From Podarcis melisellensis (taxonomy: Eukaryota), in NCBI GenBank assembly GCA_964234715.1, contig OZ174275.1: a DNA stretch of 64,000 nucleotides. The stretch is one strand, 5' to 3'. Below are positions 18,880 through 59,272 of this stretch, in pieces. Below the pieces are notes generated by a model. That model had not been told where the DNA came from, made no database searches, and saw nothing but the letters and a program-made list of their open reading frames with translations. Position 1 is the stretch's first letter. Every line of letters begins with the position of its first letter. Both the position numbers and the translations under genes were made by a program.

Positions 18880-20180
18880 GTCCCGACTTCAATGCCCTCT
18901 ACTACACATCCGGCGCCTTCCAATGACTTACTTATGTAGCTAAAAGTGGGCGCGGATCGTGTACTCTTCTCGCGACAGCTTCTTCCTTGCCTCTTTCTGT
19001 AGTGGCTACTCCGATTCAAAATCTACAATTTCCTACCTCTGGGTCAGAAGATTCTTAGCCCACCTACCGTGTGACGCAAAAGCCTATTTTTTTTCCTTAT
19101 TGGCTGTCAGAAACATATCTAAGAAGCACGACGAGAAATGCCAAGAGAAATTCAATGGGGCGGGGGGGATGTAGAATTGTGTACAACCGTAGTCCTCGCT
19201 GACACTTCAGTTCTAGACCCTTTTTACCACCGAGCTGCAAAGCTATAGAGCGGCGACCATAGAGAATCATAGCTTTCGCGTTGGTTGGTTTTTACCGGAA
19301 GTTTAGGCTGCAGGTCACTGTCAATATTGCTTCCCCCCCCAATAGGCTAGGCCTATCGCGCTCTAGAAGTGGCGGAAACGGACTAGCTGGAACCGGAAGT
19401 AGTTGGAGTGGGAGGGGAGGGAAAGGACGTGGAGGCAGCGGCTCGAGCCGTATCTTCCTCTACCGCAGGTCACGTGGAGGTGGCGCGCTAGCCTCTGCTT
19501 CCACCTCCCCACCCCCACCCCCTCGGCGGAGCCCGGCGCGGCTGCAGCATGGCGGACACGGCCTCTCAGATGCTGCTGGGCTCCGGCCTCACGGTGCTCT
19601 CGCAGCCGCTCATGTACGTGAAGGTGCTCGTGCAGGTGAGGCCTTCAGTCCTGGCAGGTTTTCAGTGCTCGTGAGGGCGACGAAGGGGGCGGCACTGAGT
19701 GGGTGGGAGGAGGTCAAAGCAGCCCCAGGTCGCCTCCCGCCCTCGCTCACTGGGGAAGAAGTTGCCTCCTCGCTCCCAAACGCGTTTCCATAGCAGCGGC
19801 CCCCCCCCTCCTGCGTAGCCAGAGCAGCCCCTCAAAGTAGCGGAGTCGCCCTTCGCCTTTGGTCGTATCCGGGCCTTGCTTTGCTTCAGACTTCCTTTTC
19901 ACAGGGCGGCGGCTGCTCGCCTCCCTACCCCGAGGCGTAGCAGCAGCAGCAGCGCCGCCGCCCCGGCGGAGGAAAAAGAAAGCCGCTCGTAGGGCCGCGG
20001 GAAGCGCTTCCTCACTTTCGCATCATCCTGACAGCAGGCGCCGTCATTTGCAGTCCAACTTCGCTTTTGAGTCTTTCTTTATTGCGCTGCCTAGAACCGC
20101 AGGTGTTGAGGTGGGTCCGGCGAGGGGAGCCCTTGGGAATCCGCAGCCTCAGCCTGTTCTCTTCCAGAGTTGCTTGGTTA
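18880..20180. promoter_or_regulatory. CpG-island promoter of MTCH2
   Basis: CpG-rich stretch spanning exon 1, with ETS/GABP-type ACCGGAAGT motifs (~19294, ~19392), a GTCACGTG E-box (~19469), GC boxes and a TCTCGCGA motif (~18968). Confidence 0.75.
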
Positions 20181-23100
20181 CTTACGAGCCCTCCCTCGAG
20201 ACTGGTCGAGGGGAAAGACTTCCCCAGGGTAGAATTTCAGTCCAGTTGCGGTGAACGGCTGGGCAAGGGTCCCTGGGTCCTTTGCAGAGAGCCTCCCTGT
20301 TGTAGAAAGAATGCTTCCTGCGGGGTTTTGCTGCTGTCAAGCACTCCGCCAGCTGCTTGTCACACTCGCATGCCATCCTGCCGCAGATACTCGTGGACTG
20401 GCATTCCGTCTCTGATCCGTTGCACGAGAGTTTGTAACGCTGCCACTTTACCCTGCGGTGACACTTTAAGGAGACCCTGGCGTGGCGGTAACAGCAGTCA
20501 TGAATGAAACAGCACTGATCCACTGCATCCACAGGGCTTCCAGAACCACCAGTTCCACAGTAGCAGCCATATAGATTGAGTCCTAGCAGTGGGATTTGCA
20601 ACCGGTGCCGGTAACACCAGAGGGTCAAAATCAGATCCAAGACACTGCGTTTCTCTCGCTTGCTGCCTTTGCTGTGTCCGCATTCCTGAGAGAACAAAAT
20701 TGCCAGTGCTAGCCACAAAACAATCCTCATTGCAGAAGCCAATGTTTATTTTTAGCCAGTTTCAGACTGGCATACCTCACTCAGATGTTTTTGTGAGCCT
20801 GGCTGATTTCTGAATCTGGATCAGTTTTCTGCACTGGTTTTATGTGTGCCTCGTATTCAAATTTGTCCTCTTCTCATTTTTATTGGTAGCGTTTCGGACA
20901 CTCCCAGTAGTTCCAGCCTCAAGAACTTCTTTATTTAGTATATTTGGCTGCATGTTGCTTTTGGCCAGCTGTGGCTTTTTACTTGTATCATCATTGGCTG
21001 AAAAGCATAGCTGCCCCAGGTACAACAGCCCTGTCTGTTAAAATATTTAACAGCTTGCATATCCACCTTCTAATAAAAAATGCAGGAACGGGAAGCACAT
21101 TAGCATTTCTGAGTTTGGATACACAAATTCCTATACAGTAATATAAGGTTCAGAATTTAAGGACAAAAGACAATTGTGAGGCTTCCTGTTATTAACCTCA
21201 CAGTGGTTCTCATATGATTCACTACACAGAGGATATGTGGAGCTATGTAGTGGGATATCTATCTCAAAAATAAATACCGCCTACCTCTGCCAAGAAAGCA
21301 CATTGTCTTCTTTGGTAAATTGGACTTGTGAAACACAGTATCCAATTTGTCCGTAAAACGTTTTGCTAAATTGCAGACCTTGATAATGTGAGTTATAAAC
21401 TATGGAAAACATGTTGCCTAGTATGATATATTGTGACAAATCAAGTGGCTATTCACAGCATAAAAAGCAAAATATCTCCATGTTCTCAACTAGTTGTTTA
21501 ACATTTAATCACAGCAAACTTATCTTCAGAGTCACCTAGATCACATCAAGGACAAACATTTTAAAATACCTTTACCTGGTTGGAAAAAATGCAAGGGGGG
21601 ATCACTTTGGAGCAAAGAAGTGGGGGAATATAGTGTGTCTGTGGAGATACATGTTTGGTCTGTAGCTCCAAATTTTATTTAAAGTATTTATTTCCTGTTC
21701 TTTAGCCAAAAAGATTCCCAGAACATCTTACGACAATCACTAGTAAGACATATATATGTATAGCACTAAGAGATGGCACCTGGTATCCAGTGACTCTGCC
21801 AGACTTTCTGCTGAGCTGCAGACCACCCAGACATTTAATGTGAGCTACAAACTATTACCATCTTCTGAATATAGTGGTTTTAGAACTTTAAACTTACAGT
21901 TAGCAGCACAGCCATAGAATTCTAAGAACAAAAAATCGATCATATTTTCTCTTATGGTTCAGTTTTCAAATGTCCAGTGAGTGGAACAGCCATAGTTGTT
22001 CACTGCTAGGGAATGTTGGGGTTATTCCTTGGGGTGCTGTTCACACTGTAGAGGTTGCTGCAGGCTGTCTCTTTATTTTGAAGGTGGGATATGAACCCCT
22101 CCCTCCAACTCTGGGAAGAAATATCTTTGGGCGACAGGTCTACCAGCTGCCTGGTCTCTTTGCTTATGGTGAGTGCATAATGTATAAGATTTGTGAATCA
22201 GCCTTAAAGACTTAAAGCAGGATTGGATTGCTGTAATTGCTGCACTGCACTTGGCGGTGCCTACGCCTTTGAAGCAGAGCTTCTCATGTGTACAAGAATT
22301 AGCTAGAGATCCTGCAACTGTTGGAATAGTGGTAGTTTATATAGGTAAAGTGGTGAGTCTCAACTCTCAAGAAGCTTCAGTGCTACAGCCATGATCATTG
22401 GCTTTTGAATTCATGCAGTGAGACAAGAGTTAGAATAACAGGAAAGTACAATGTTTGGGCATCTGAGCCTCTCTCTTCCTGTAGCGTATTGCCCTTCAAG
22501 TATCCTTCATATGATTTAGCCTGTGCATGCATGTGCATGTCCCAGCAATGCCACACTTCATGCTCCGACTTGTATATTATTGGCTCTGAGCTTGCTTGCT
22601 TTCTTGCACACTGTTACTCAAACTTAGGATCATTAACAAGTAACTTGTTACTGCAACCCAGAGATGGGGGAGCTGTGACCCTCTAGATGTTGTTCAACTT
22701 CCTAACCAGTTGGCAGTATCTGGGAAACCTGTGACTTTCCCTCCTTGTTGTAGAGGATGGCAGAGTTTGGGAAGGGCAAGCCTGGTTCTGGTGCATGCTG
22801 ACATTATTTTAAGTGTAGTCCAATGTTCAGTTAAGCATGCTGAAATAAATAGGACATGAGCATACTTTGCTGTGCAGGAGATTATGCCTGCAGCTGTGTA
22901 TCGTGACCTTTGTACTGAAGTTTCTAACTTGGCATCAGGCCCTGTCTTTTCTAGCATAGGATAGGCCGAATTTTAAATAGTTTTGCATCCCTAGCTTCTT
23001 TTTTTAAAACACATTTTTGAGTGCTGGAATCTCCTCTAGGCAGGTGGGTGAATGGGGTGAGCAGTCGATGTTGAGTATTATCTTTTAATCTGTATTGACT

Positions 23101-26100: not shown

Positions 26101-29100
26101 TTTTGGTTAAATTAACATGGGCAGCCTCCAGGAATAGGAGCCAAGTTGGGCTCCCCTTCAAAAGAGGCACTGCCACCTACCCACTTCTAAAAGATGCTGG
26201 GGGAGCAGCAGGGTGTGTGAGGTGAATGACTGGGTGGCAAAGACAAGTCAGGCAGTGGGGAACCCTTTAGAGCAGTGGTTCTCAAGCTGTGGGTCCCCAG
26301 ATGTTGAACTACAACTCCCATCATCCCTGAGCTCTGGCCTTGCTAGCTAGGGGTGATGGGTGTTGTAGTTCAACAACATCTGGGGACCCACAGGTTGAGA
26401 AAGGCTGCTTTAGAGCCTATGGGGCCCTTGGTTGGTGCCTGGCAATGGTGCAGAAGTGTCCCACATTGCAGCCTGCCAGTTTTGTTCCATATCAGTGAAC
26501 AGAGGCCAGGAGAACTGACTTTAAGCATGCAATATTAGGTTGTAATTAGCCCAGGGTTCTCCTTGCCCGAAGGAGCAATTTATTCTCTCCTCCCATTGTG
26601 CACTGTCCTGGGGGTTCTCTCAATCCTCCAGAGCAGATTTTAGGAGGATGTGGCAGGAGGAGAGGGAGGGCAAGTCCTGTTACGTGAGTGGAAATCCTTG
26701 CATTGGCTTTTATGGGGGGGACGGGGGGGGGGAGCACATTGTACCTTGGGCAGGGCTTCTGCTGATGAGTTTGTTAGGTGAATCCCACCCAGTATGACAG
26801 GATGTCTACAAGCTGTTTAAAGGGGAGTGTACATCCAGGCACAGAAGTCCTAAAACTAGAGAGATGAGGCACCTAGAAAGAGCCCTTCCAGTGTGCTATA
26901 GTGGGCAATAGGATGCACTTGGAAAGTCTGTGCCTAGCATGATAATAGAGCAAAGCACGGTCTCTAAAAGAGCTGAAACCTGTGGCTCGGCTGAAATTGG
27001 CTTTGATTGGTAGAGGAATTATAAACTCAGTTTTAACCTCAAAGTGCAGCTCCTTAACACAAATGCTTCGAGTTGTAACTCACACTAAGTGACAACCATT
27101 AGGTGCTTTAGTGGAACCTTGTCAGATGGGGAGCATTCTGTCACCTTAAATCTTGCCATTTCCTTGGCTGGCTTTTTGCTGATGTTTTTGCCATTCCTTT
27201 TGGTCATAGACTTCTCAAGAGATGATTGCACGTTCTGCTGCTACGCTAGTCACCCACCCTTTTCATGGTAAGTAGGGGCCAGTAGCCCTTTGGTCACTGC
27301 CAGCACACATTTACCTCCCTGGCAACAAGAAAGAGGAAAGTCATTCACCAGCCTTTCCTTGTTACATTCAGGTCCCTTCATGGTCATTGTTTTTTGTGCT
27401 TCGGGTATCCATCTTGCACAGTGCTGGCGTTGATCAATCATCTGATATGTAATTATTTCCTGATGACATTTATACTCCGTTTTTCCTAATCAGCTGAAGG
27501 TGCCTAACAAAATGAGTCAAAACACACTGGAAGCCAGTGCAGCTGTTTCAGTAAGGGGGTCACATGGTCCCTGTACGCAGCCCCTGTTAACAGGCTGGCT
27601 GCAGCATTCTGCCAATTGTAGCTTTCAAAAGCAGCCCAATGCAGAGAGCATTGCAGTAATCCAAACGTGATGTGTATGAGGCAAGTGTTGTCGTGACCAA
27701 GAATGGGCATAGTGGGCACACTGGTGTCAGCTAGGCAAAGGCATTCTGGCCACAGCTGTCACTTGGGCATCCAAGGTCATAGCTCCTTACCATGAGCCTG
27801 AATTTTCAAGGGGCATTCTATTCCATTTTAACTGTGGTTGAACCCCTGTTCCCGAACCAGGGGCATATCTGTCCTGTCTGAGTTAAGCTTCAATTAGGAG
27901 AGTGGCGAAGTAGTGTGTTCCTGTGTTGGCCTGAGTAGGGGAAAGAGAGTGGGGAGGATCCTTGCTGATGTCATTTCCCTTTTCCCTCCGTCCTTGTCCT
28001 TCAGTGATCACGTTGAGGTGTATGGTGCAGTTCATTGGCAGAGAGACCAAGTACAGGTATGTGCATATTTGTGACCAGGCGGCTTCCTTTGGACTTTAGC
28101 CCACAAGGCCAATGCCTTTTTTGTAGGAGAAGTTAAAAAGAGGCCAGGGAGTAATTAGTGTGTGAGCACAGAGGTTTCCTGTCATTGTTGAAGTTGAAAA
28201 CGGGGAGGGGGTCAGGGAGAGCCACTTGTTTCTTGATTTCTGAGAGTAAATGAATTTCTTTCTTAATTTTCAGTGGGGTATTGAGCTCCTTTGTCACCAT
28301 TTACCGGGAAGAGGGCATCTTGGGATTTTTTGCGTGAGTACTTCCTTGTGTGAGTGGGGGGGGTGAACTTCCTTTTGTACCTGCGATGGTTGTTGGTTCA
28401 TGGGGGACATGGGGAACAGGGAGGGACAGAGGACGAGTCCAATTATGGCAAGAGCTCGTGGGAGGCAGAATGTTTGACTAGTTGAAACTTTGGTCTAATT
28501 CATTTTTTTATAATATTTTTTATTGGTTTTCCAACACAGATAAAAAACAAAACAACACACTCACATAAACAAACGAAAACATACAAACATGTATAATTTC
28601 AAAAACGTTTTTTTCATAACCTTACTTCTCGGACTTCCCCTTACCTCCCCTTTTCTGCATCCTTGTTTTAAAAATTTTTCAGCAACTATTCAGACCAATT
28701 AATTAATTACTTATTTTCTTTTTAAACTTCTTCTAACACTTAATCAGTTACATATTTACACACTTAATCAGTTCTATATTTTCCTTTCCCCTGACATTTT
28801 AGCATTCTTCAATTTTACAACAATTTTTAAGATATACTTTAAATTTCTTCCAATCTTCTTCCACCGTCTCTTTTTCTTGGTTACGGATTCTGCCGGTCAT
28901 CTCCGCTAGTCCCATGTAGTCGATCACCTTTGTCTGCCATTCTTCCAGTGTGGGTAGTTCTTGTGTCTTCCAATACTTTGCTAAGAGGATCCTTGCTGCT
29001 GTGGTAGCATACATAAAAAACGTCCTATCCTTCTTTGATACCAATTGGCCGACCATGCCCAGGAGAAATGCCTCTGGTTTCTTATGAAAAGTACATTTAA

Positions 29101-32100
29101 GTACCTTCTTAATTTCATTATAAATCATTTCCCAGAAGGCTTTAATCTTCGGGCAAGTCCACCAAAGGTGGTAAAAGGTTCCTTCAGTTTCATTACATTT
29201 CCAGCATTTATTATTGGGCAAATGATAGATTTTTGCGAGCTTGGTTGGGGTCATGTACCACCTGTAAATCATTTTCATAATATTTTCTCTTAAGGCATTA
29301 CATGCCGTAAATTTTGGTCTAATTCAGCCGAGATTTTCTTAAGCAGATTGTGATATTTCTTGGGATAATGTGTAACATTGTTCTTAGCACTAAAGTTGAT
29401 CAGCCTCCCATCATGGAAATTCAGCCAGACTTTCTGCCTCACACACTGGAGGGAAGCGTGCATATGTATATAAGATGTTTTTTCCAGGCAGTATGTGGCC
29501 TCACTTATCAGTTTTTTCCCTTTTCCAGGGGCCTTATTCCCCGCCTGCTTGGGGACATCCTGTCCTTGTGGCTCTGTAACATGCTGGCCTACCTCATCAA
29601 TACCTATGCACTGGAGAATGGGGTAAGTAGACTACAAGTAGTGTGGTGTATGGGGTGTGGACAATGGAGTGCTGGGCTCAGGTAGGCAGGTATGAAAGGT
29701 TTCCTCCCCTAGCCTTGGTCAGCTTGAAAGGTCCCTATCATGGTCCTGCTGCACATCCTCCTGAGCAATACAGTGGAACCTCGGGTTACGTTACCCTCAG
29801 GTAATGTAAAATTCGGGTTGCAAAAGCGGCAAACCTGGAAGTGTTTCGCTGCGCGCACATGTGCAGAAGTGGTCTCTCCGTTTGCGATAACTTTGGGATA
29901 TGGCTGGACCTCCTGAACGGATCCCGTTCACAACCAGAGGTACCACTGTATATCCTTTTTGTCCTCAACCTCTGAATGTGGTTGTATGTTGCTACCTCCA
30001 TTACATCTAGTAATTTCAGGCAGCTCCTTCAGATTTTGCTCCATTGCAGGGATTATGATGGACTTGGGAGTGACTACTCTTAATTGAGGAACAGGGGTCA
30101 GTTACTTTATTTCTCTTCTTTCTAGGTCTCCACCATGACTGAGATGAAAAGCTATTCTCAGGCTGTCACTGGAGTGAGTGTACAGTTCATTTCTCTTTCC
30201 TGTGGGAAGAGGGGGTGGGTTGTGTCCTGAGGATGTGAGCGTAGGCTTGAGCACTTCATCCTGAAGCTGGGGGTGATGCTGGTGATGTCCTGTGCAAGAA
30301 GCCTTGCAAGCTGTACACCTCAAGATCTCTGTTCAATACCTTTGAGATCCGTCTGATCTCTGGTGCTGAGCTCTTAAGTAGGTGCTGTTGCTTGGCTCAA
30401 ACTACTGTTCGGCTTAAGCTGAACAATTACCAGCCGTTTCATTTTATCTGCTTCGTGATTGCTGTGAACTCCTGTCCTGAAACAGAATTGCGACTACTGC
30501 AATAACGCATCACTGCCCTGTGGAGCTCCTTCTCTCTAGCCTAAGGCATACTCCCTGCAACTACAGGGTGACTGTTCGATTTGCTGTAGCTCTAAGAAGC
30601 TTCTGCCATTAACAGGCCATCAGCTGGGTGGGGCTTGTGAAGGAAAACAGGGCTGTTTTCACTGGTGTATTTTGCTGTATTGTATCTACAGTTCTTCGCC
30701 AGTATGCTGACTTACCCCTTTGTACTCGTCTCAAACCTGATGGCCATTAATAGTTGTGGGTGAGTGCAGAGTCTGATTTCTTTAACTTGGCTTTTGATTG
30801 TGTGTTTTCAAATGTATAATACAAGCAGTTCAGTCTCATTTAGTCTTGGTTTGTCAGGTCCCTTTCCTTCAAGAAGCAATGAGAGTTTTAGCAATGTGCT
30901 GCATCTCGCATCTGTTCTCTTCATATTTTCAGCAGCTGCTTTTCAGTGTTTAGGTACCACAACCCACAGAGCTTGAAAATAAAGCATCTGACATGGAAAG
31001 TCTCCTAGAATAGCTTTTAAGGGTTTAATTTAAAAGTTCAGTGGTCAAAGAGCCATCTCCTTCACTGCGCCCTGCCTATGTTCAAAATAGTTGTGGCTGG
31101 AGATGCAGCTAAGGACTTCTAAAAATTTGAACCTGGCTTTCAATCTTGTGGTCATCTGCAAATCCAGTAAATATTTTTAAATTCATGTGGACACTACAGG
31201 TCTATTCAATAGATTTCCAATCTCAAGAGAAAATAAGGGATCTGTCCTGTTTCTGCCCGTTGTTGTCAAGCTTTTTTATTATTCATTTTTATCTTACTAC
31301 AGTACATGGTTTATTGGTGTTGATTCTAAGAGAAGGGGGGAAATGTTTGTATTTTTCTTCACTTATCTCTACATTATTCAAGATTTTATAAACCTCTTGC
31401 ATTCTCCTCCGAACTCGTGTTTTTGTTTTTGTTTTACACTCTCTGGACAAATAATTTTGCTTTGCTTTACACCAGAGCTGACTCATCATGGTAGTAAAGA
31501 TGGGGTTTGGTTTTCTGGGTGCCTTGCCTTGTACACCACAGCAAAAAGCTGGCTGCAAGCCTGAACTGCTGGTGTACAAATGCATTTTTATCTAGAAGGA
31601 ACAGACCTTTTACTTCGCTCATTGATTCAGACCTGTGTCACTCTCTTTTTTTAATATAAAAGCTCAGCCTGAATGTTCTTCGAAGTAATTGCTCTAGTCT
31701 AGAAGTTGCATCTGGGCTACTGTTTCCCAAGTGACTATGAAACTAGAAATGGATGCTCTGCACATGGGATATTGTTGGTGAGCCATTTTGGTAACTTACC
31801 CTGGTCTCTTGCTGTTTTTCAGGCTCGCTGGTGGCCTCCCTCCTTATGCCCCAGCCTACTCATCCTGGTTACACTGCTGGAGCCAGCTACAGGGGGAGGT
31901 ATGTCTGTCTTGTCTGCCCTTTCATTAGAGGACCATAGCATATTGCCCTTGATGTGGGTGGGAGAGGAATAATTGGCAATACAGAGTCCCCCTCTCCAAT
32001 TCTTCCAGGGGTTTTGGCCGTTGGGTACACCAGCCTCCCAAGCAAGGATGCTAGACCAAGATGTCACTGTGTGGCTTGGGGTGCCCTCACCTCTTCTGGG

Positions 32101-53906: not shown

Positions 53907-56900
53907 TCACCTCGTCCAGATACTCGCACGACTGTCCAGGCTGGTGGCCGATTTGATGCTACAACATTTCTTCACAATCATGTTGATGTAGGCTTTCATG
54001 ATTTTAATGATCTCTCCCACCTAATAAGATAAGAGGGGACGGTCAGGATCACTGAGCAGTTATATAGCAGCAATTTCTGATGGTGGCCAGAAGCCAATGG
54101 AATATAACTGGAATGGGGACTTGCGAAGGGTCTTCTGTATCCCTGTGCTTTCTCCCAACCCCTCCTGCTACTATCACTTTGGGAAACGCAAGAAAGAAGC
54201 CTGCATTTCTTTGGCTGTGCATACCTGTTCCCTGAGCAGAATTCAACCCCCGCTTGCACGTGGGGGGTTTAAATTCCGCTCAAGGAACAGGCACAGGCAG
54301 CCCAAAAAATCTGTCAAATGCAGGCTTCTTCCTTGCTCCCCCCACCCTCCTTTGCTCAGGGAACAGGAGGGAGAAATTCTTTGCCAGCTTTGTGACTGGT
54401 GATTCCTAAGCCCCACCCACCTCTCAAATCTGACCCATGTGGCCAATCTGGGGAGCTAAAATTGTTCCCCACCCTTGCAACATACTTTAAAAAGGAAGCC
54501 TTTCGGCTTATGCTTTTTGCCCACCCAGTCCTGCCTCAGCACAAAATGCTTGTGGTCACTCACAAAACAGGCTAACTTAGTGTTCCATGAAGCATACCTG
54601 GGGGGTTTCAAAGTACATCTCTCTCTCATCCACTGTCAGCTTGAAGGTATTGGGCTGGGGAGCCCCAAAGAAGACAATGTGCTCATATTGGAACGTTTCT
54701 AGGGGTTTGGGGTCTCCCCGTTTGTACACCGACACATTCTCTGTGCTGACACTTAACCAGAGGTCGTTGGGAAAGCCACCTTCCTTACACTGCAGGAAAG
54801 AAACAAGAAGAGTTAGCAAAGGGAAGGTGTTGCTTGGGGGGAAAAGCATGCAGTGAACGACTGAACCGAAGACTGAAAGCCCCTGGTCAAAAACCAGTCC
54901 TCTCCCTGCCCCCCCCCCCATCCAATGAACCCCCCGAGTAATTAGTAAAGATTCCCACCTCAAAAGCAAATAATTAAAAAATGGTGTCAAAGTAAGACCC
55001 AAAATATTTTATTTATTTATTTTGATTTCCACTTCATTCTTTAATGGGATCTGCCAAATCTTAGCTCAACCGTGAACAGGCTTGGTAGCTAATATTTATT
55101 TATTGTGTTTACATCCTGCCTTTCCAGACAGTTCAGGTCTGACTACTCTGTTCTCCTGCTTTCCTGTTTTATTCTCCAAACAATGCTGAGAGGTAATTTA
55201 GCTGTGACTGAGCCAGGATTTGAACCTGGGTGTCCTCCCTCCTAGCCCAATGCTCTTAGCTACACCCACATTGGCTCTTCAGCAATTCATCGATTAGCTT
55301 GCACCTCAATTCCCGCCCCCACAATCCTCAATCTGTAATAGTGGGGGTAATAAAATGGAACCATCTTTGCAGGTTCTTATTAAGTGCAACTGAGATAATA
55401 AACATAATCCTCCTGTAGCATCTTTCAAAGAAGGAGGATTAATACTGAAGCTTCTTGTGTGTCTCTCACCTCCACATCAAAGACAGTGGAGCCGTAGCCC
55501 GACCATTCCTTCATGATGTTCATGTAGGCCACCATGGCTTGCTGCTGGAGCAGCCCCTGCAGTTTGCACCACTTTTCTGTTATGCTGGCCCGAGCTGCCG
55601 ACAGCTCCTCTTTCACCCACATCTCCATCATCTGCTCCTCTTCCACCTTTTGCTTCTTCACTGAGCCTGCCTTAAAGCTACGCTTCAGAGTGCCCTCCAG
55701 GAAGCTGGTCCGCCTTTTCTCCAGAGCATGGCTGCTAGGACCGCTACTCTTCATGGACTGCAGGATTTTGGACTTCAGCCTCTTCACTGGATAGATGTTG
55801 TCCAGGGACCAGGAGATTTTGGAAATATCCCCATAGAGGTACTGCAGCCTCAGAGCAGCCAAGTGCTGCAGTGTCTCCTCTGGACCAGGGAAATGGCCAT
55901 CAATGAGACTTTCATGAGCCTGTGAATAGCAGAAGGAGCAATTTTATTCGTGGGTCTATAAATGTTGTTACTTGCTATTTTATTGTTCTCTGAAACTTTG
56001 GAATTTTAATACTGTACGGTGTATGGTGTAACCAACCTTGGGAGGTAGATACACTAATAAGCAGGCAAATAACTAGCTAACTAAAATATGTTTTTCCCCA
56101 AAGGCTGTTTGCTTCAAGAGACCATCCCAATGCCTATGCTTACCCCTTTGGAATTATAATTAAGTTATGTATATTGCCTTATAAGTCAAGATGAACAACT
56201 CAGTGTCCTAATAGCAATGGGCTGTTGCAGGCAAATTCTCCACAACCCTGGCTTGAGCCAGCCACCCACTCAGCCACTCACCTGCTTATTGTCTCCCATG
56301 CGAAGACTTACCTGCTCAAACATGAAAGCAAATTCCACCCCTTCCTTAGGAACGTTTTCAACATCCAAGAAACAATACAGTTTAAAGTACAGCTGCCAGT
56401 GCCCATCCTCATCCTCCTCTTCTACGGACCCAGCAAGTCTGAAAGATGAGGAAGAAGCTGGTTACCTTCTGGTTCGTTGGTTAAGAAGAGCTGGTCTACA
56501 CGTAGCATCTGTCTCTGAAACAGCATCTCCATAGCACCCTGCCATAAGGTCTCAGAGTACTAGCAACATGGCAGAAGGCCTTCTTGTTTAGAAAGTATCA
56601 GATCCCCCAATGCTAAACAGGAGGATTATTCCTGTGAGACACCTACCTCTCAAACTTGGCCAGAACATCGGCTACAATCACCCGACTCTCAATGGCCTTG
56701 TCCACATGCTTGTTGCGTTCAAAGAGGGCAAACATGTTCCGACTATCTTCCATGGCCAACCCCCGGATCAGCTTCTCTACCACCTACAAAGGGAGGAGGG
56801 AGACCACGTTACTCTACAAAGGATTTGGTTGCACAAGGAACCTCTCAGACAGATGCAAACAGGCTGGACTAAGAGAGAGAGACATATATTCCCTCCACTT

Positions 56901-59272
56901 CCGCTAGTAGAGGCCATCTGAAGCAAGCTGAATGCCCCTTCTTCCCTGGACATCTTTGCCTTGAAAATTCTGCCTTCGTTCCTACCTCTCCGGCACTGGT
57001 ATGAGAATTGATGGTAATTTGACAGGAACCTCCTCCGTGGCAGTAGACGGTGGTGGTCATTTCCTCCCGGGTGATGAGGGCCTGTATTTCCTCCTGGGAG
57101 GGGACAAACTCCCTGCTCTTGGTTCTTTTCAGTGAATCAGTGATGAACTGAGAATAGCGATCTATTTCAGTGCCTGGGAAGAGATCTTTTACTCTGGTTG
57201 AGGGAGGGTGAGGAGAGAGAAGAGATAAATAACATATTGCCATTCTCTCATGAAACAAACTTTGACCTAGAACCGTGTCATTTGTATAGCGAGGCCAAGC
57301 CAACTCAAGAGGCTGTGCGCTACCTACAGCCTATGAAGATGTTGTATCACTCAATATAAGCAAATTTCATTCATTTGGACAGAGGTTATTTACTGTTTTC
57401 TGCCTCTGAGACCAATATTTACACCTTTGTCTAAAAATATCAGGACCAGCTTGGCACTGCTGCTGAGTAGAAAGCAGGTATGAGGGACAGTAGTACAGGA
57501 AGCACTGGAGTTTTCACAAAGCAAGGTGGAGGTAAATTGGGGGTGGGTGGCCTCTGCAATGATCTCTAAGGATGCAAGTATTAGGCAAAGGGCCTCCTGT
57601 TTTGCATGCAGAAGGTTCCTGGTTCTACTCTGGCTAGGACTGAATCCTGGAGAGCTGTTGCCCTTCAGTGGAGATAATACTGAGATGGTCGGACTGATGG
57701 GCTGACTCAATATGAAGCAGCCTTCCTATGTTTCTGTATGTCTGCAGCGACTGGTGCTATGTAATGCATTCCTCAGTTCTCTGGAGTCAGGGAGCTAGCT
57801 ACAATTGCAGAGAAATTCCTCCAGGATGGTTCTTACCTTCTGAGGTGGAACTTGAGGTAACGGAGGATTCCTCTGCTGGGCAGGAAGGTGCAGCTCATGC
57901 AGGTCATCAGCTGCCAGTGGTGAAGGTTCCCCGGTCTGTTGGGCTGTGGCACGTGGTTTGTCTGCTTGATCAGCTGACAGTACACCTCGTCCCGGAGGGG
58001 CCTGAGATCATGGCAGGTCTGCAGAATGCCCTGGATAATGGGGATGGGGTCCGAGACTGTCTCGATCTCCTGAAGGGAGTTAAAGATCTTCATTGCTTCG
58101 TCCTGGAGGCTGCTGTAGCCTTTCTCTTGCTGCACTGCAGTGGGAGGAGGCGGCACAAACAACAAGGCAGGGAGAAGGCAGTCAGTATGTCCTCCAACTA
58201 CGGACTGGCCAGCTGGTAGTTCATCACTCCAGGAAACACATTTGCTCATGCCCACAACCCAGTGGAGAAAGGAAACTCCTCTGACAATTATCACTACCCA
58301 AAGGTCACTTGAGAGACAATCCAGTTCCCCGCATTAGAAATGGTTACATGATAGGGCTATGATTCTGCTCTTTTCTTAATGCACAATTCTTTGTATATCA
58401 GCTAGTTAATTCCATTTCACTGGTAAGTTCACTGCATCTTCCCACTTCTACAGTGTTTTTTTAAACATCAGAGTTCAGCAGGAGTCAACACAATAACTCT
58501 GATTTACAGTGCAATTCTATGCATGTTTATTAGGATGTAGGACCCACTGAGACTTACTTCTGAGTCAGTGTACACAGAATTCTTGTGCACACTCAGCTAA
58601 GAAGTAAGTTGCACTGAAGTTGAACCTACTTTTGAGGAAACGTGTATACTGGGTTGCACTGTAAAGCTGGATGACCTTCACCCTGGCAAGATTCTGCCAC
58701 AGTCCCCTCCCAGCCTCTAAAAAATATTCCTTTTGAACCCTTGACATAGCATCCTCAAAAGCCACCAAGTCACTCACAGTTGACCCCAACGTCCCCATAT
58801 GGCAGTGGTAGAAGCGGTGAGTGCAAGGGGTGCTGGGTGTATCTCAGGATAGGATTCCTCCGGTAGATCTGTTCTACCACTTCAGGGTTCATGCTGTTCT
58901 CCTGAAAGGAAGGGGTGGGCAAATAGAGGTTACCTTTACAGGGCTTCTCTCTTTCCCTCCAACTATCTAATTGCACTATTAAATGGAAGTGCTCCCAGTC
59001 CATTACAGAAGAGATAAAACAACAGTTAAAGGCCTTGCACTGCAAAAATGGCAAAGTGGTCAGAAACAGGGGAAACTGCCAAACCAAGTCCATAGAAGGA
59101 TTTGGAGATCACTTTATATCACAAAATATCCAGAGTATGTCAGGCCAACAACAGCCCTCTCATCAAAAGGAATTCTGAATATTTAGAAACACACCATGTT
59201 CTGACAGATCATAATATTGCTTTTAGTTGTTGTTGAATAAAATGTGCATCTACACCTTTCTGCCGATTTTAA

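Follow-up and report, generated by a model that had tools for sequence, protein, structure and literature searches.

The window analysed here is a stretch of 64,000 nucleotides from the lizard Podarcis melisellensis (contig OZ174275.1 of assembly GCA_964234715.1). It contains the 5' part of MTCH2 on the plus strand and, within the first intron of MTCH2, a complete gene for a secreted phospholipase A2 (sPLA2) on the minus strand (Table 1). In the list of open reading frames (ORFs), the sPLA2 frame is unbroken over 20182..20742 on the minus strand and gives 186 amino acids from a TTG. The 182-residue translation from the ATG shares 99% of its residues with the annotated protein P0001 of Podarcis raffonei, which carries the source label 'phospholipase A2 crotoxin basic subunit CBb-like'. 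The translated ORF matches Pfam PF00068 with 96 bits and an E-value of 2.5e-27 (cut-off 32.1), so the ORF is not due to chance. The PDB matches comprised 153 distinct sequences. The top one was 1y6o (E 3.6e-23), a pig pancreatic group IB PLA2 engineered to the group-X disulfide pattern; crotoxin B and enzymes of the pancreatic IB, group X and group IIE types came next with similar scores. The residues typical of group I, II, V and X sPLA2s, including Y-G-C-x-C-G-x-G-G, C-C-x-x-H-D-x-C-Y and Asp99, are all found in the lizard sPLA2.

Table 1. Positions of the sPLA2 gene, its parts and the surrounding MTCH2 elements in the window.
Feature	Position	Strand	Remarks and basis
sPLA2 precursor coding sequence, complete, single exon	20182..20730	-	182 codons + stop; ATG 20730-20728, stop 20184-20182
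Predicted signal peptide and short propeptide, residues 1-28	20647..20730	-	hydrophobic N-terminus read from the sequence; cleavage predicted
Convertase-type site R-E-K-R closing the propeptide	codons 20658-20647	-	sequence
Predicted mature chain, 154 residues, 16 Cys, isoelectric point 8.9	20185..20646	-	script on translation
Ca2+-binding loop YGCYCGTGG, precursor residues 54-62	20545..20571	-	family alignment
Active-site motif CCFIHDCCY, precursor residues 73-81, with catalytic His and Ca2+-ligand Asp	20488..20514	-	
C-terminal tail, 26 residues past the last Cys	20185..20262	-	begins P-x4-N-W-T-E-I
Sequon NWT in the tail, mature position 134	codons 20247-20239	-	
Sequon NGS in the core, mature position 76	20421-20413	-	
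AATAAA, candidate polyadenylation signal, 99 nt past the stop	20078..20083	-	sequence
Candidate TATA-like block TAAATAAAG, ~190 nt upstream of the PLA2 ATG	20935..20945	-	suggested by conservation
MTCH2 exon 1, coding part	19549..19638	+	RNA-seq, peptide identity
MTCH2 intron 1	19639-22086	+	encloses the entire PLA2 gene, which is antisense to it
MTCH2 exon 2	starts 22087	+	RNA-seq splice jump

The initial annotation, made from the sequence alone, described this nested PLA2 as a protein of unusual architecture with group-X disulfides, a cationic surface and a long C-terminal tail. Its observations were confirmed, and its interpretation was partly supported. The mature start had been placed at 20634, but the first mature codon, Ser29, lies 12 nt further, at 20646, and 20182-20184 is the stop codon. 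The cysteines of the mature chain are at positions 11, 28, 30, 45, 46, 51, 52, 62, 75, 82, 88, 93, 95, 102, 121 and 128. The script and the alignment with PLA2G10 agree with the reported 16 Cys after REKR; these include C11, C50, the equivalent of C77 and the C-terminal cysteine. The group-X-type cysteine set and the R-x-K-R propeptide are both present. The chain has 22 basic residues (7 K and 15 R) versus 13 acidic ones (6 D and 7 E), which gives an isoelectric point (pI) of 8.90 and a net charge of about +8.8 at pH 7. These counts, the sequons NGS and NWT and the 26-residue tail were all reproduced by the script, and both of the basic clusters named in the annotation, including KPRRKH, were found in the chain. 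The 62-66 region is 2 residues longer than in PLA2G10 and 3 residues shorter than in pig IB in the alignment. Therefore the full pancreatic loop is absent, as had been noted.

An AlphaFold2 model built with the family alignment described below shows the sPLA2 fold with helices where expected, at a mean predicted local distance difference test score (pLDDT) of 68.5 and a predicted template-modelling score (pTM) of 0.66. Foldseek gave target-normalised TM-scores of 0.83-0.86 to 1y6o, 1le6 and 4uy1, and 6q42 was also among the top hits. Groups IB, X and II were indistinguishable for this model by Foldseek. In the tail, the block mean pLDDT is 68 at residues 151-160 and 43-48 beyond residue 160, residues 167-182 are below 50, and the only helix is a short one at the N-W-T-E-I-L segment.

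The locus was examined in two stranded RNA-seq runs and two contig sets of a related Podarcis. Positions 19374-19638 are covered at a depth of ~100, and the reads are spliced from 19638 to 22087, therefore MTCH2 intron 1 contains the whole PLA2 gene in antisense. MTCH2 exon 1 lies in a CpG-rich stretch at 19.0-20.0 kb with a GC content of 0.595, and 544 bp separate it from the PLA2 stop codon. The few intronic reads in the two stranded runs have the orientation of MTCH2. In run X5, contigs across 20071-20612 are strandless and have a depth of 2-3. One X5 contig (depth 3.2) joins MTCH2 exon 1 (19631) to 20383-20612 through a plus-strand GT..AG intron, which makes 20383-20612 an alternative exon in MTCH2 sense that overlaps the PLA2 coding sequence. 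On the PLA2 side, the upstream alignment shows the TAAATAAAG block kept in Podarcis, L004 and L005, the last two being sauropsid loci, with partial conservation in turtle.

Relatives of the lizard sPLA2 form a distinct family. A word search over 5.8 billion protein clusters returned 39 relatives, and a profile search with the family alignment returned 44 clusters at 141 bits or above. In an exhaustive HMMER search over 1.84 billion representatives, those of the family scored at least 127 bits, whereas other single-domain sPLA2s reached at most 106 bits. Two-domain otoconin-90-like proteins were the next-best scorers after the family, partly because the scores of their two domains add. The named members come from squamates (Podarcis, Pogona, Tiliqua, Rhineura, Anolis, Pantherophis and Varanus), turtles, frogs, caecilians, newts, coelacanth, sturgeon, paddlefish, sharks and rays. 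No bird, crocodilian, mammal or teleost members were found among the named clusters, though these groups are heavily annotated. The source labels of the members are mixed (crotoxin-like, taipoxin-like, 'minor isoenzyme-like', 'otoconin-90-like' and 'F17-like'), which shows that no separate name exists for the family.

The design of the protein is strongly conserved in this family. When 31 family sequences were aligned, Y54, G55, C56, C58, G59, G61 and G62 of the Ca2+ loop were invariant, and so were C73, C74, H77, D78, C79, C80, Y81 and D124 of the active site, D124 being the D99 equivalent. Fourteen of the 16 cysteines are invariant and the remaining two are present in at least 90% of the rows. 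Exactly 16 Cys were counted in 26 of the 30 rows scored and 17 in three rows, and one row was not scorable. In 28 of 30 rows, the mature N-terminus is immediately preceded by the motif R-x-K/R-R, the exceptions being Anolis, without a site, and Mobula, with SRR. The N-terminal T-L-W-C-Y-R segment, the V-K-W-Q-x-Y segment and the start of the tail, C-P-x4-N-x-T-E-I-x-x-W, are kept from shark to lizard. The sequon just past the last Cys, at about mature position 132-134, is found over the same range in about 21 of the 30 rows scored. The tail itself varies from 5 to 61 residues, with K/R-rich additions in anurans. Most members have a pI of 8.5-9.5; Xenopus tropicalis and the measured divergent ray copy are acidic (5.3). 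A basic patch after helix 3, A-K-P-K/R-K/R-K/R-H, is conserved across tetrapods and weakly developed in sharks and sturgeon. Pairwise Nei-Gojobori ratios of nonsynonymous to synonymous substitution (dN/dS) are 0.10-0.19 among four sauropsid copies, and the least saturated of these pairs has a dS of 0.80 and a dN/dS of 0.19. The features that the initial annotation had called unusual are therefore real, but they are common to an ancient orthologue family from shark to lizard and are not specific to the lizard.

The genomic position of the gene is also conserved. The annotated gene range equals the length of the coding sequence in shark (549 bp), frog (642 bp), turtle (612 bp), sturgeon (552 bp) and ray (558 bp), therefore each of these copies is single-exon. 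In frog and turtle the PLA2 gene lies inside an opposite-strand Mito_carr gene, and in frog, turtle, L005 and Podarcis it is within MTCH2 intron 1. MTCH2 exon 1 follows the PLA2 stop at 0.66 kb in turtle and 1.56 kb in L005, in the same arrangement as in Podarcis, and turtle, sturgeon and the sauropsid contig have exon-1 peptides with 90-97% identity. In sturgeon (locus L003, 8493-10552) the PLA2 gene is antisense but not nested: the two genes are arranged head to head, with PLA2 1.4 kb upstream of MTCH2 exon 1, and PLA2 is flanked by MTCH2 and an M14 peptidase (AGBL2-like) gene. In shark, PLA2 lies outside a Mito_carr gene model of 265 residues, 4 kb past its annotated 5' end; the models of frog, turtle and sturgeon are longer, with 299-301 residues. 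The association with the MTCH2 5' end is ancient, since it recurs in all of shark, sturgeon, frog, turtle and lizard; nesting is demonstrated for tetrapods only.

To place the family among the known sPLA2s, a tree of 73 PLA2 domains was inferred in IQ-TREE with LG+C20+F+G4 by posterior mean site frequency (PMSF), and a second tree was inferred with LG+G4. The family and a divergent shark/ray branch formed one clade (100/97 in the mixture-model tree), and the core family was supported by 91/82 under LG+C20 PMSF and by 97/87 under LG+G4. Branching within the family broadly follows the species tree, with L005 placed with turtles, and L004 and P0023 with squamates. PLA2G10 from panda, birds, python, shark, teleosts and Xenopus is a separate clade, among which an extra sequence, P0129, also falls; it groups with group II in the mixture-model tree (86/92), and its support under LG+G4 is 89/92. 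The IB-like sequences and both otoconin-90 domains are further distinct clades, the two otoconin-90 domains with supports of 100/99 and 99/94. The lizard gene is thus outside PLA2G10, group II including IIF, IB and otoconin-90, and the proposal that it fits no named sPLA2 group holds in both maximum-likelihood trees. These results show that the gene is intact, ancient, under purifying selection and separate from PLA2G10, IB, group II and otoconin-90.

Both kinds of gene are present in the same animals. One assembly of the shark Chiloscyllium plagiosum has a family gene (P0032, 549-bp range) and an annotated PLA2G10 (P0210), which spans 30 kb and is therefore necessarily interrupted. Xenopus tropicalis has a family copy (P0036) and a PLA2G10-type copy (P0130), and both kinds are also found in ranid frogs (P0027 from Aquarana and P0239 from Rana) and in snakes (P0007 from Pantherophis and P0097 from pythons). 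Because this shark assembly, frogs and snakes each contain both genes, the family gene cannot be PLA2G10.

Several further copies were observed in the family searches. A second, divergent and acidic single-exon paralogue exists in sharks and rays (P0038, P0049, P0233-P0235) and is located ~7.5 kb downstream of a RasGEF gene (Amblyraja L002 10001-10558, and the Carcharodon locus). Ranid frogs have an extra paralogue (P0043/P0185/P0186), which eleven public runs each contain as a contig of 1.6-1.7 kb. Six of these contigs were fetched (L006-L011), and three of the six start within ~10 nt of one another, 55-64 nt before the ATG. The ranid contigs are probably transcripts. The Komodo dragon model P0046 (Varanus komodoensis, 97 aa) matches the family over 70 residues and diverges past the Ca2+ loop; a damaged gene copy, wrong splicing in the model or a faulty assembly could each explain this.

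The lizard sPLA2 shares single features with several known enzymes. With PLA2G1B it has in common the C11-C77 cysteines, a zymogen with an N-terminal propeptide and a 17-21 loop of similar length, and family members are often named 'minor isoenzyme-like' by NCBI. In contrast, the aligned IB-like protein is without C50 and the C-terminal Cys, IB has 14 Cys and the full pancreatic loop, and it belongs to a separate clade. The IB propeptide ends in a single Arg and is cut by trypsin. PLA2G2F also has a long extension past the last core Cys, which in IIF is Pro-rich and has one extra Cys. However, IIF is without C11/C77 and falls in the group II clade, and its tail could not be aligned. The lizard tail has no Cys and no alignable similarity to that of IIF, so the suggested IIF-type tail was not borne out. 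Within the family, the tail is conserved only in its first ~10 residues, including N-x-T, and varies in length.

Taken together, the lizard gene is probably the Podarcis representative of a lineage of conventional secreted PLA2s that is ancient and apparently unnamed. The invariant motifs and the comparison with groups IB and X suggest how the protein would work. The signal peptide would direct the precursor into the secretory pathway, and a furin-type convertase would cut after R-E-K-R to remove the propeptide. Zymogens of groups IB and X are activated by the removal of an N-terminal propeptide, in group X by furin-like convertases (PMC11949945 and references therein). The freed N-terminal helix would then complete the interfacial binding surface. 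Eight disulfides in the group-X pattern, as the alignment predicts the pairing, would stabilise the 154-residue enzyme, and the His/Asp dyad with the Ca2+ loop would hydrolyse the sn-2 acyl ester of extracellular phospholipids. The net positive charge, including the basic patch of tetrapods, should favour anionic interfaces, and the conserved tail start probably bears an N-glycan.

The lineage may have originated when a group-X-type mRNA was retroposed next to the 5' end of MTCH2, prior to the divergence of jawed vertebrates, since the lack of introns, the cysteine pattern of group X and the unrelated locus are in line with such an event; later losses would have occurred in mammals, birds and teleosts. 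When the family and PLA2G10 were constrained together under LG+G4, the cost was 4.6 log-likelihood units, with a p-value of 0.43 in the approximately unbiased test (p-AU). A sister relation to PLA2G10 is thus neither supported nor rejected, and therefore retroposition from group X is only plausible. The complete account is of an ancestral extra sPLA2 of jawed vertebrates with a group-X pattern, convertase activation, a basic surface and a glycosylated tail, which as an intronless retrocopy would have been antisense-linked to MTCH2 for >400 Myr, nested in tetrapods, lost independently in mammals, birds (possibly crocodilians) and teleosts, and never named or assayed. We give this complete account about an even chance.

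Other readings of the gene have to be weighed against the same evidence. It might be the lizard orthologue of PLA2G10 with nothing distinctive about it. All 16 cysteines are in the same columns as in PLA2G10 of panda, shark, python and frog, including C11/C77 and C50/C-terminal; in both the propeptide ends in basic residues, the catalytic site is intact and the full pancreatic loop is absent. PLA2G10 proteins also have pI values of 4.5-9.2 and tails of up to 16 residues, so that charge and tail leave room for this reading, as does the p-AU of the single-clade constraint. However, PLA2G10 forms its own clade, which groups with group II in the mixture-model tree, and its identity to the lizard sPLA2 is just 34-41%. 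The lizard protein has insertions of 3, 1 and 2 residues and a conserved, putatively glycosylated tail, and the family gene is single-exon and MTCH2-linked, whereas the shark PLA2G10 is a 30-kb gene elsewhere. Orthology is contradicted directly by the co-occurrence of both genes described above for shark, frogs and snakes, and we consider it very improbable. A young, lineage-specific retrocopy or retropseudogene, whose frame is open by chance, is slightly less credible still. Such a copy would be intronless, inside an intron of an unrelated gene and without sense RNA in two runs, as is seen here. But turtle, frog, sturgeon and shark carry single-exon orthologues at the corresponding MTCH2 site, the dN/dS values indicate constraint, and the catalytic and structural residues are invariant.

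Two further proposals concern function. The protein might be a bactericidal and/or heparan-sulfate-binding sPLA2 of innate immunity, resembling group IIA through its cationic surface; this proposal refines the preferred reading of an ancient sPLA2 lineage rather than offering another identity. Like PLA2G2A, the lizard protein is a basic secreted PLA2. Its net charge of about +9, its pI, the basic pI of most of the family, the conserved basic cluster of tetrapods and the K/R-rich tails of anurans would all be in line with such a role. In contrast, IIA (aardvark) is without C11-C77 and lies in the group II clade, and group IIA enzymes have 14 Cys and no propeptide. The cationic character stressed in the initial annotation is present but moderate and not distinctive, being no higher than in some PLA2G10 proteins (pI 8.5 in the python PLA2G10-like protein and 9.2 in Xenopus). 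Besides, Xenopus copies (P0036 as measured, P0041 by sequence) and the divergent shark/ray copies are acidic, and in sharks and sturgeon the basic cluster is only weakly developed. A bactericidal or heparan-binding role therefore seems unlikely, though clearly less so than either of the two identities above. The protein might also be a structural or matrix glycoprotein rather than an enzyme, like otoconin-22 in aragonitic otoconia. Otoconin-90 and otoconin-22 share the PLA2 fold and a glycoprotein nature with it, its sequons point to a glycosylated protein, one frog copy is NCBI-named 'otoconin-90-like', and the range of the family partly matches the persistence of aragonitic/vateritic otoconia (background in PMC3038909). 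However, the catalytic His/Asp, the Ca2+ loop and D99 are invariant across ~450 Myr, which argues for enzymatic constraint. Otoconin-90 has two domains in their own strongly supported clades, while the lizard sPLA2 has one domain with its catalytic residues kept, and teleosts have aragonite otoliths but lack the gene among their annotated or predicted proteins. An 'otoconin-22-like' PLA2 has been described as the nearest relative of the Pla2g2 cluster, ~40 genes from it (10.1101/583344), and hence does not fit the MTCH2 locus. The name otoconin-22 was not found among the named clusters and members looked up. An identity with otoconin-22, which the distribution and the automatic name had prompted, is not supported in view of the invariant catalytic residues, the separate otoconin-90 clade and the different locus, and a matrix role as a whole is improbable.

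Some points weigh against the preferred reading of the gene as one of an ancient sPLA2 lineage. No PLA2-sense reads were found in the two stranded RNA-seq runs, of which ~12% each was read and for which the tissue is not given; this result carries no implication for silence in other tissues. The confidence of the AlphaFold2 model is moderate, with low values in the propeptide, part of the Ca2+ loop and the distal tail. The absence from birds, mammals and teleosts applies to annotated or predicted proteins and not to genomes. The constrained tree described above, at p-AU 0.43, leaves a common clade with PLA2G10 statistically acceptable. Secretion, propeptide cleavage, glycosylation, the pairing of the disulfides and enzymatic activity are predictions from the sequence. 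Full-text literature searches returned no description of a PLA2 at MTCH2, of an intronless vertebrate sPLA2 or of an extra group-X-like lineage, but their coverage is incomplete and an earlier description is possible.

Elsewhere in the window, an ORF at 28799-29278 on the minus strand with C-W-K-C ... H-L-W-W-T-C-P resembles the C-terminal part of LINE ORF2. Several minus-strand ORFs at 54577-58294 resemble exons of a MyTH4/FERM-type protein and belong to a neighbouring gene. At about 61.7-61.9 kb there is a run of N, an assembly gap or masked sequence, which appears as X in an ORF translation.

The classes of sPLA2 follow the mammalian set, namely IB, IIA-F, III, V, X and XII. If the family is a further ancient lineage, the definition of group X by its cysteine pattern would span two paralogous lineages, and this one would combine the group-X hallmarks with separate descent, another gene structure and a conserved extra tail. 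The long antisense linkage to the MTCH2 5' end would be a clean case for the persistence of nested or bidirectional gene pairs. For venom research, the family would provide another non-toxin PLA2 that is automatically mislabelled 'crotoxin-like' or 'taipoxin-like'. An uncharacterised enzyme would also be added to the biology of reptiles, amphibians and sharks, one that might act in host defence, digestion, reproduction or biomineralisation.

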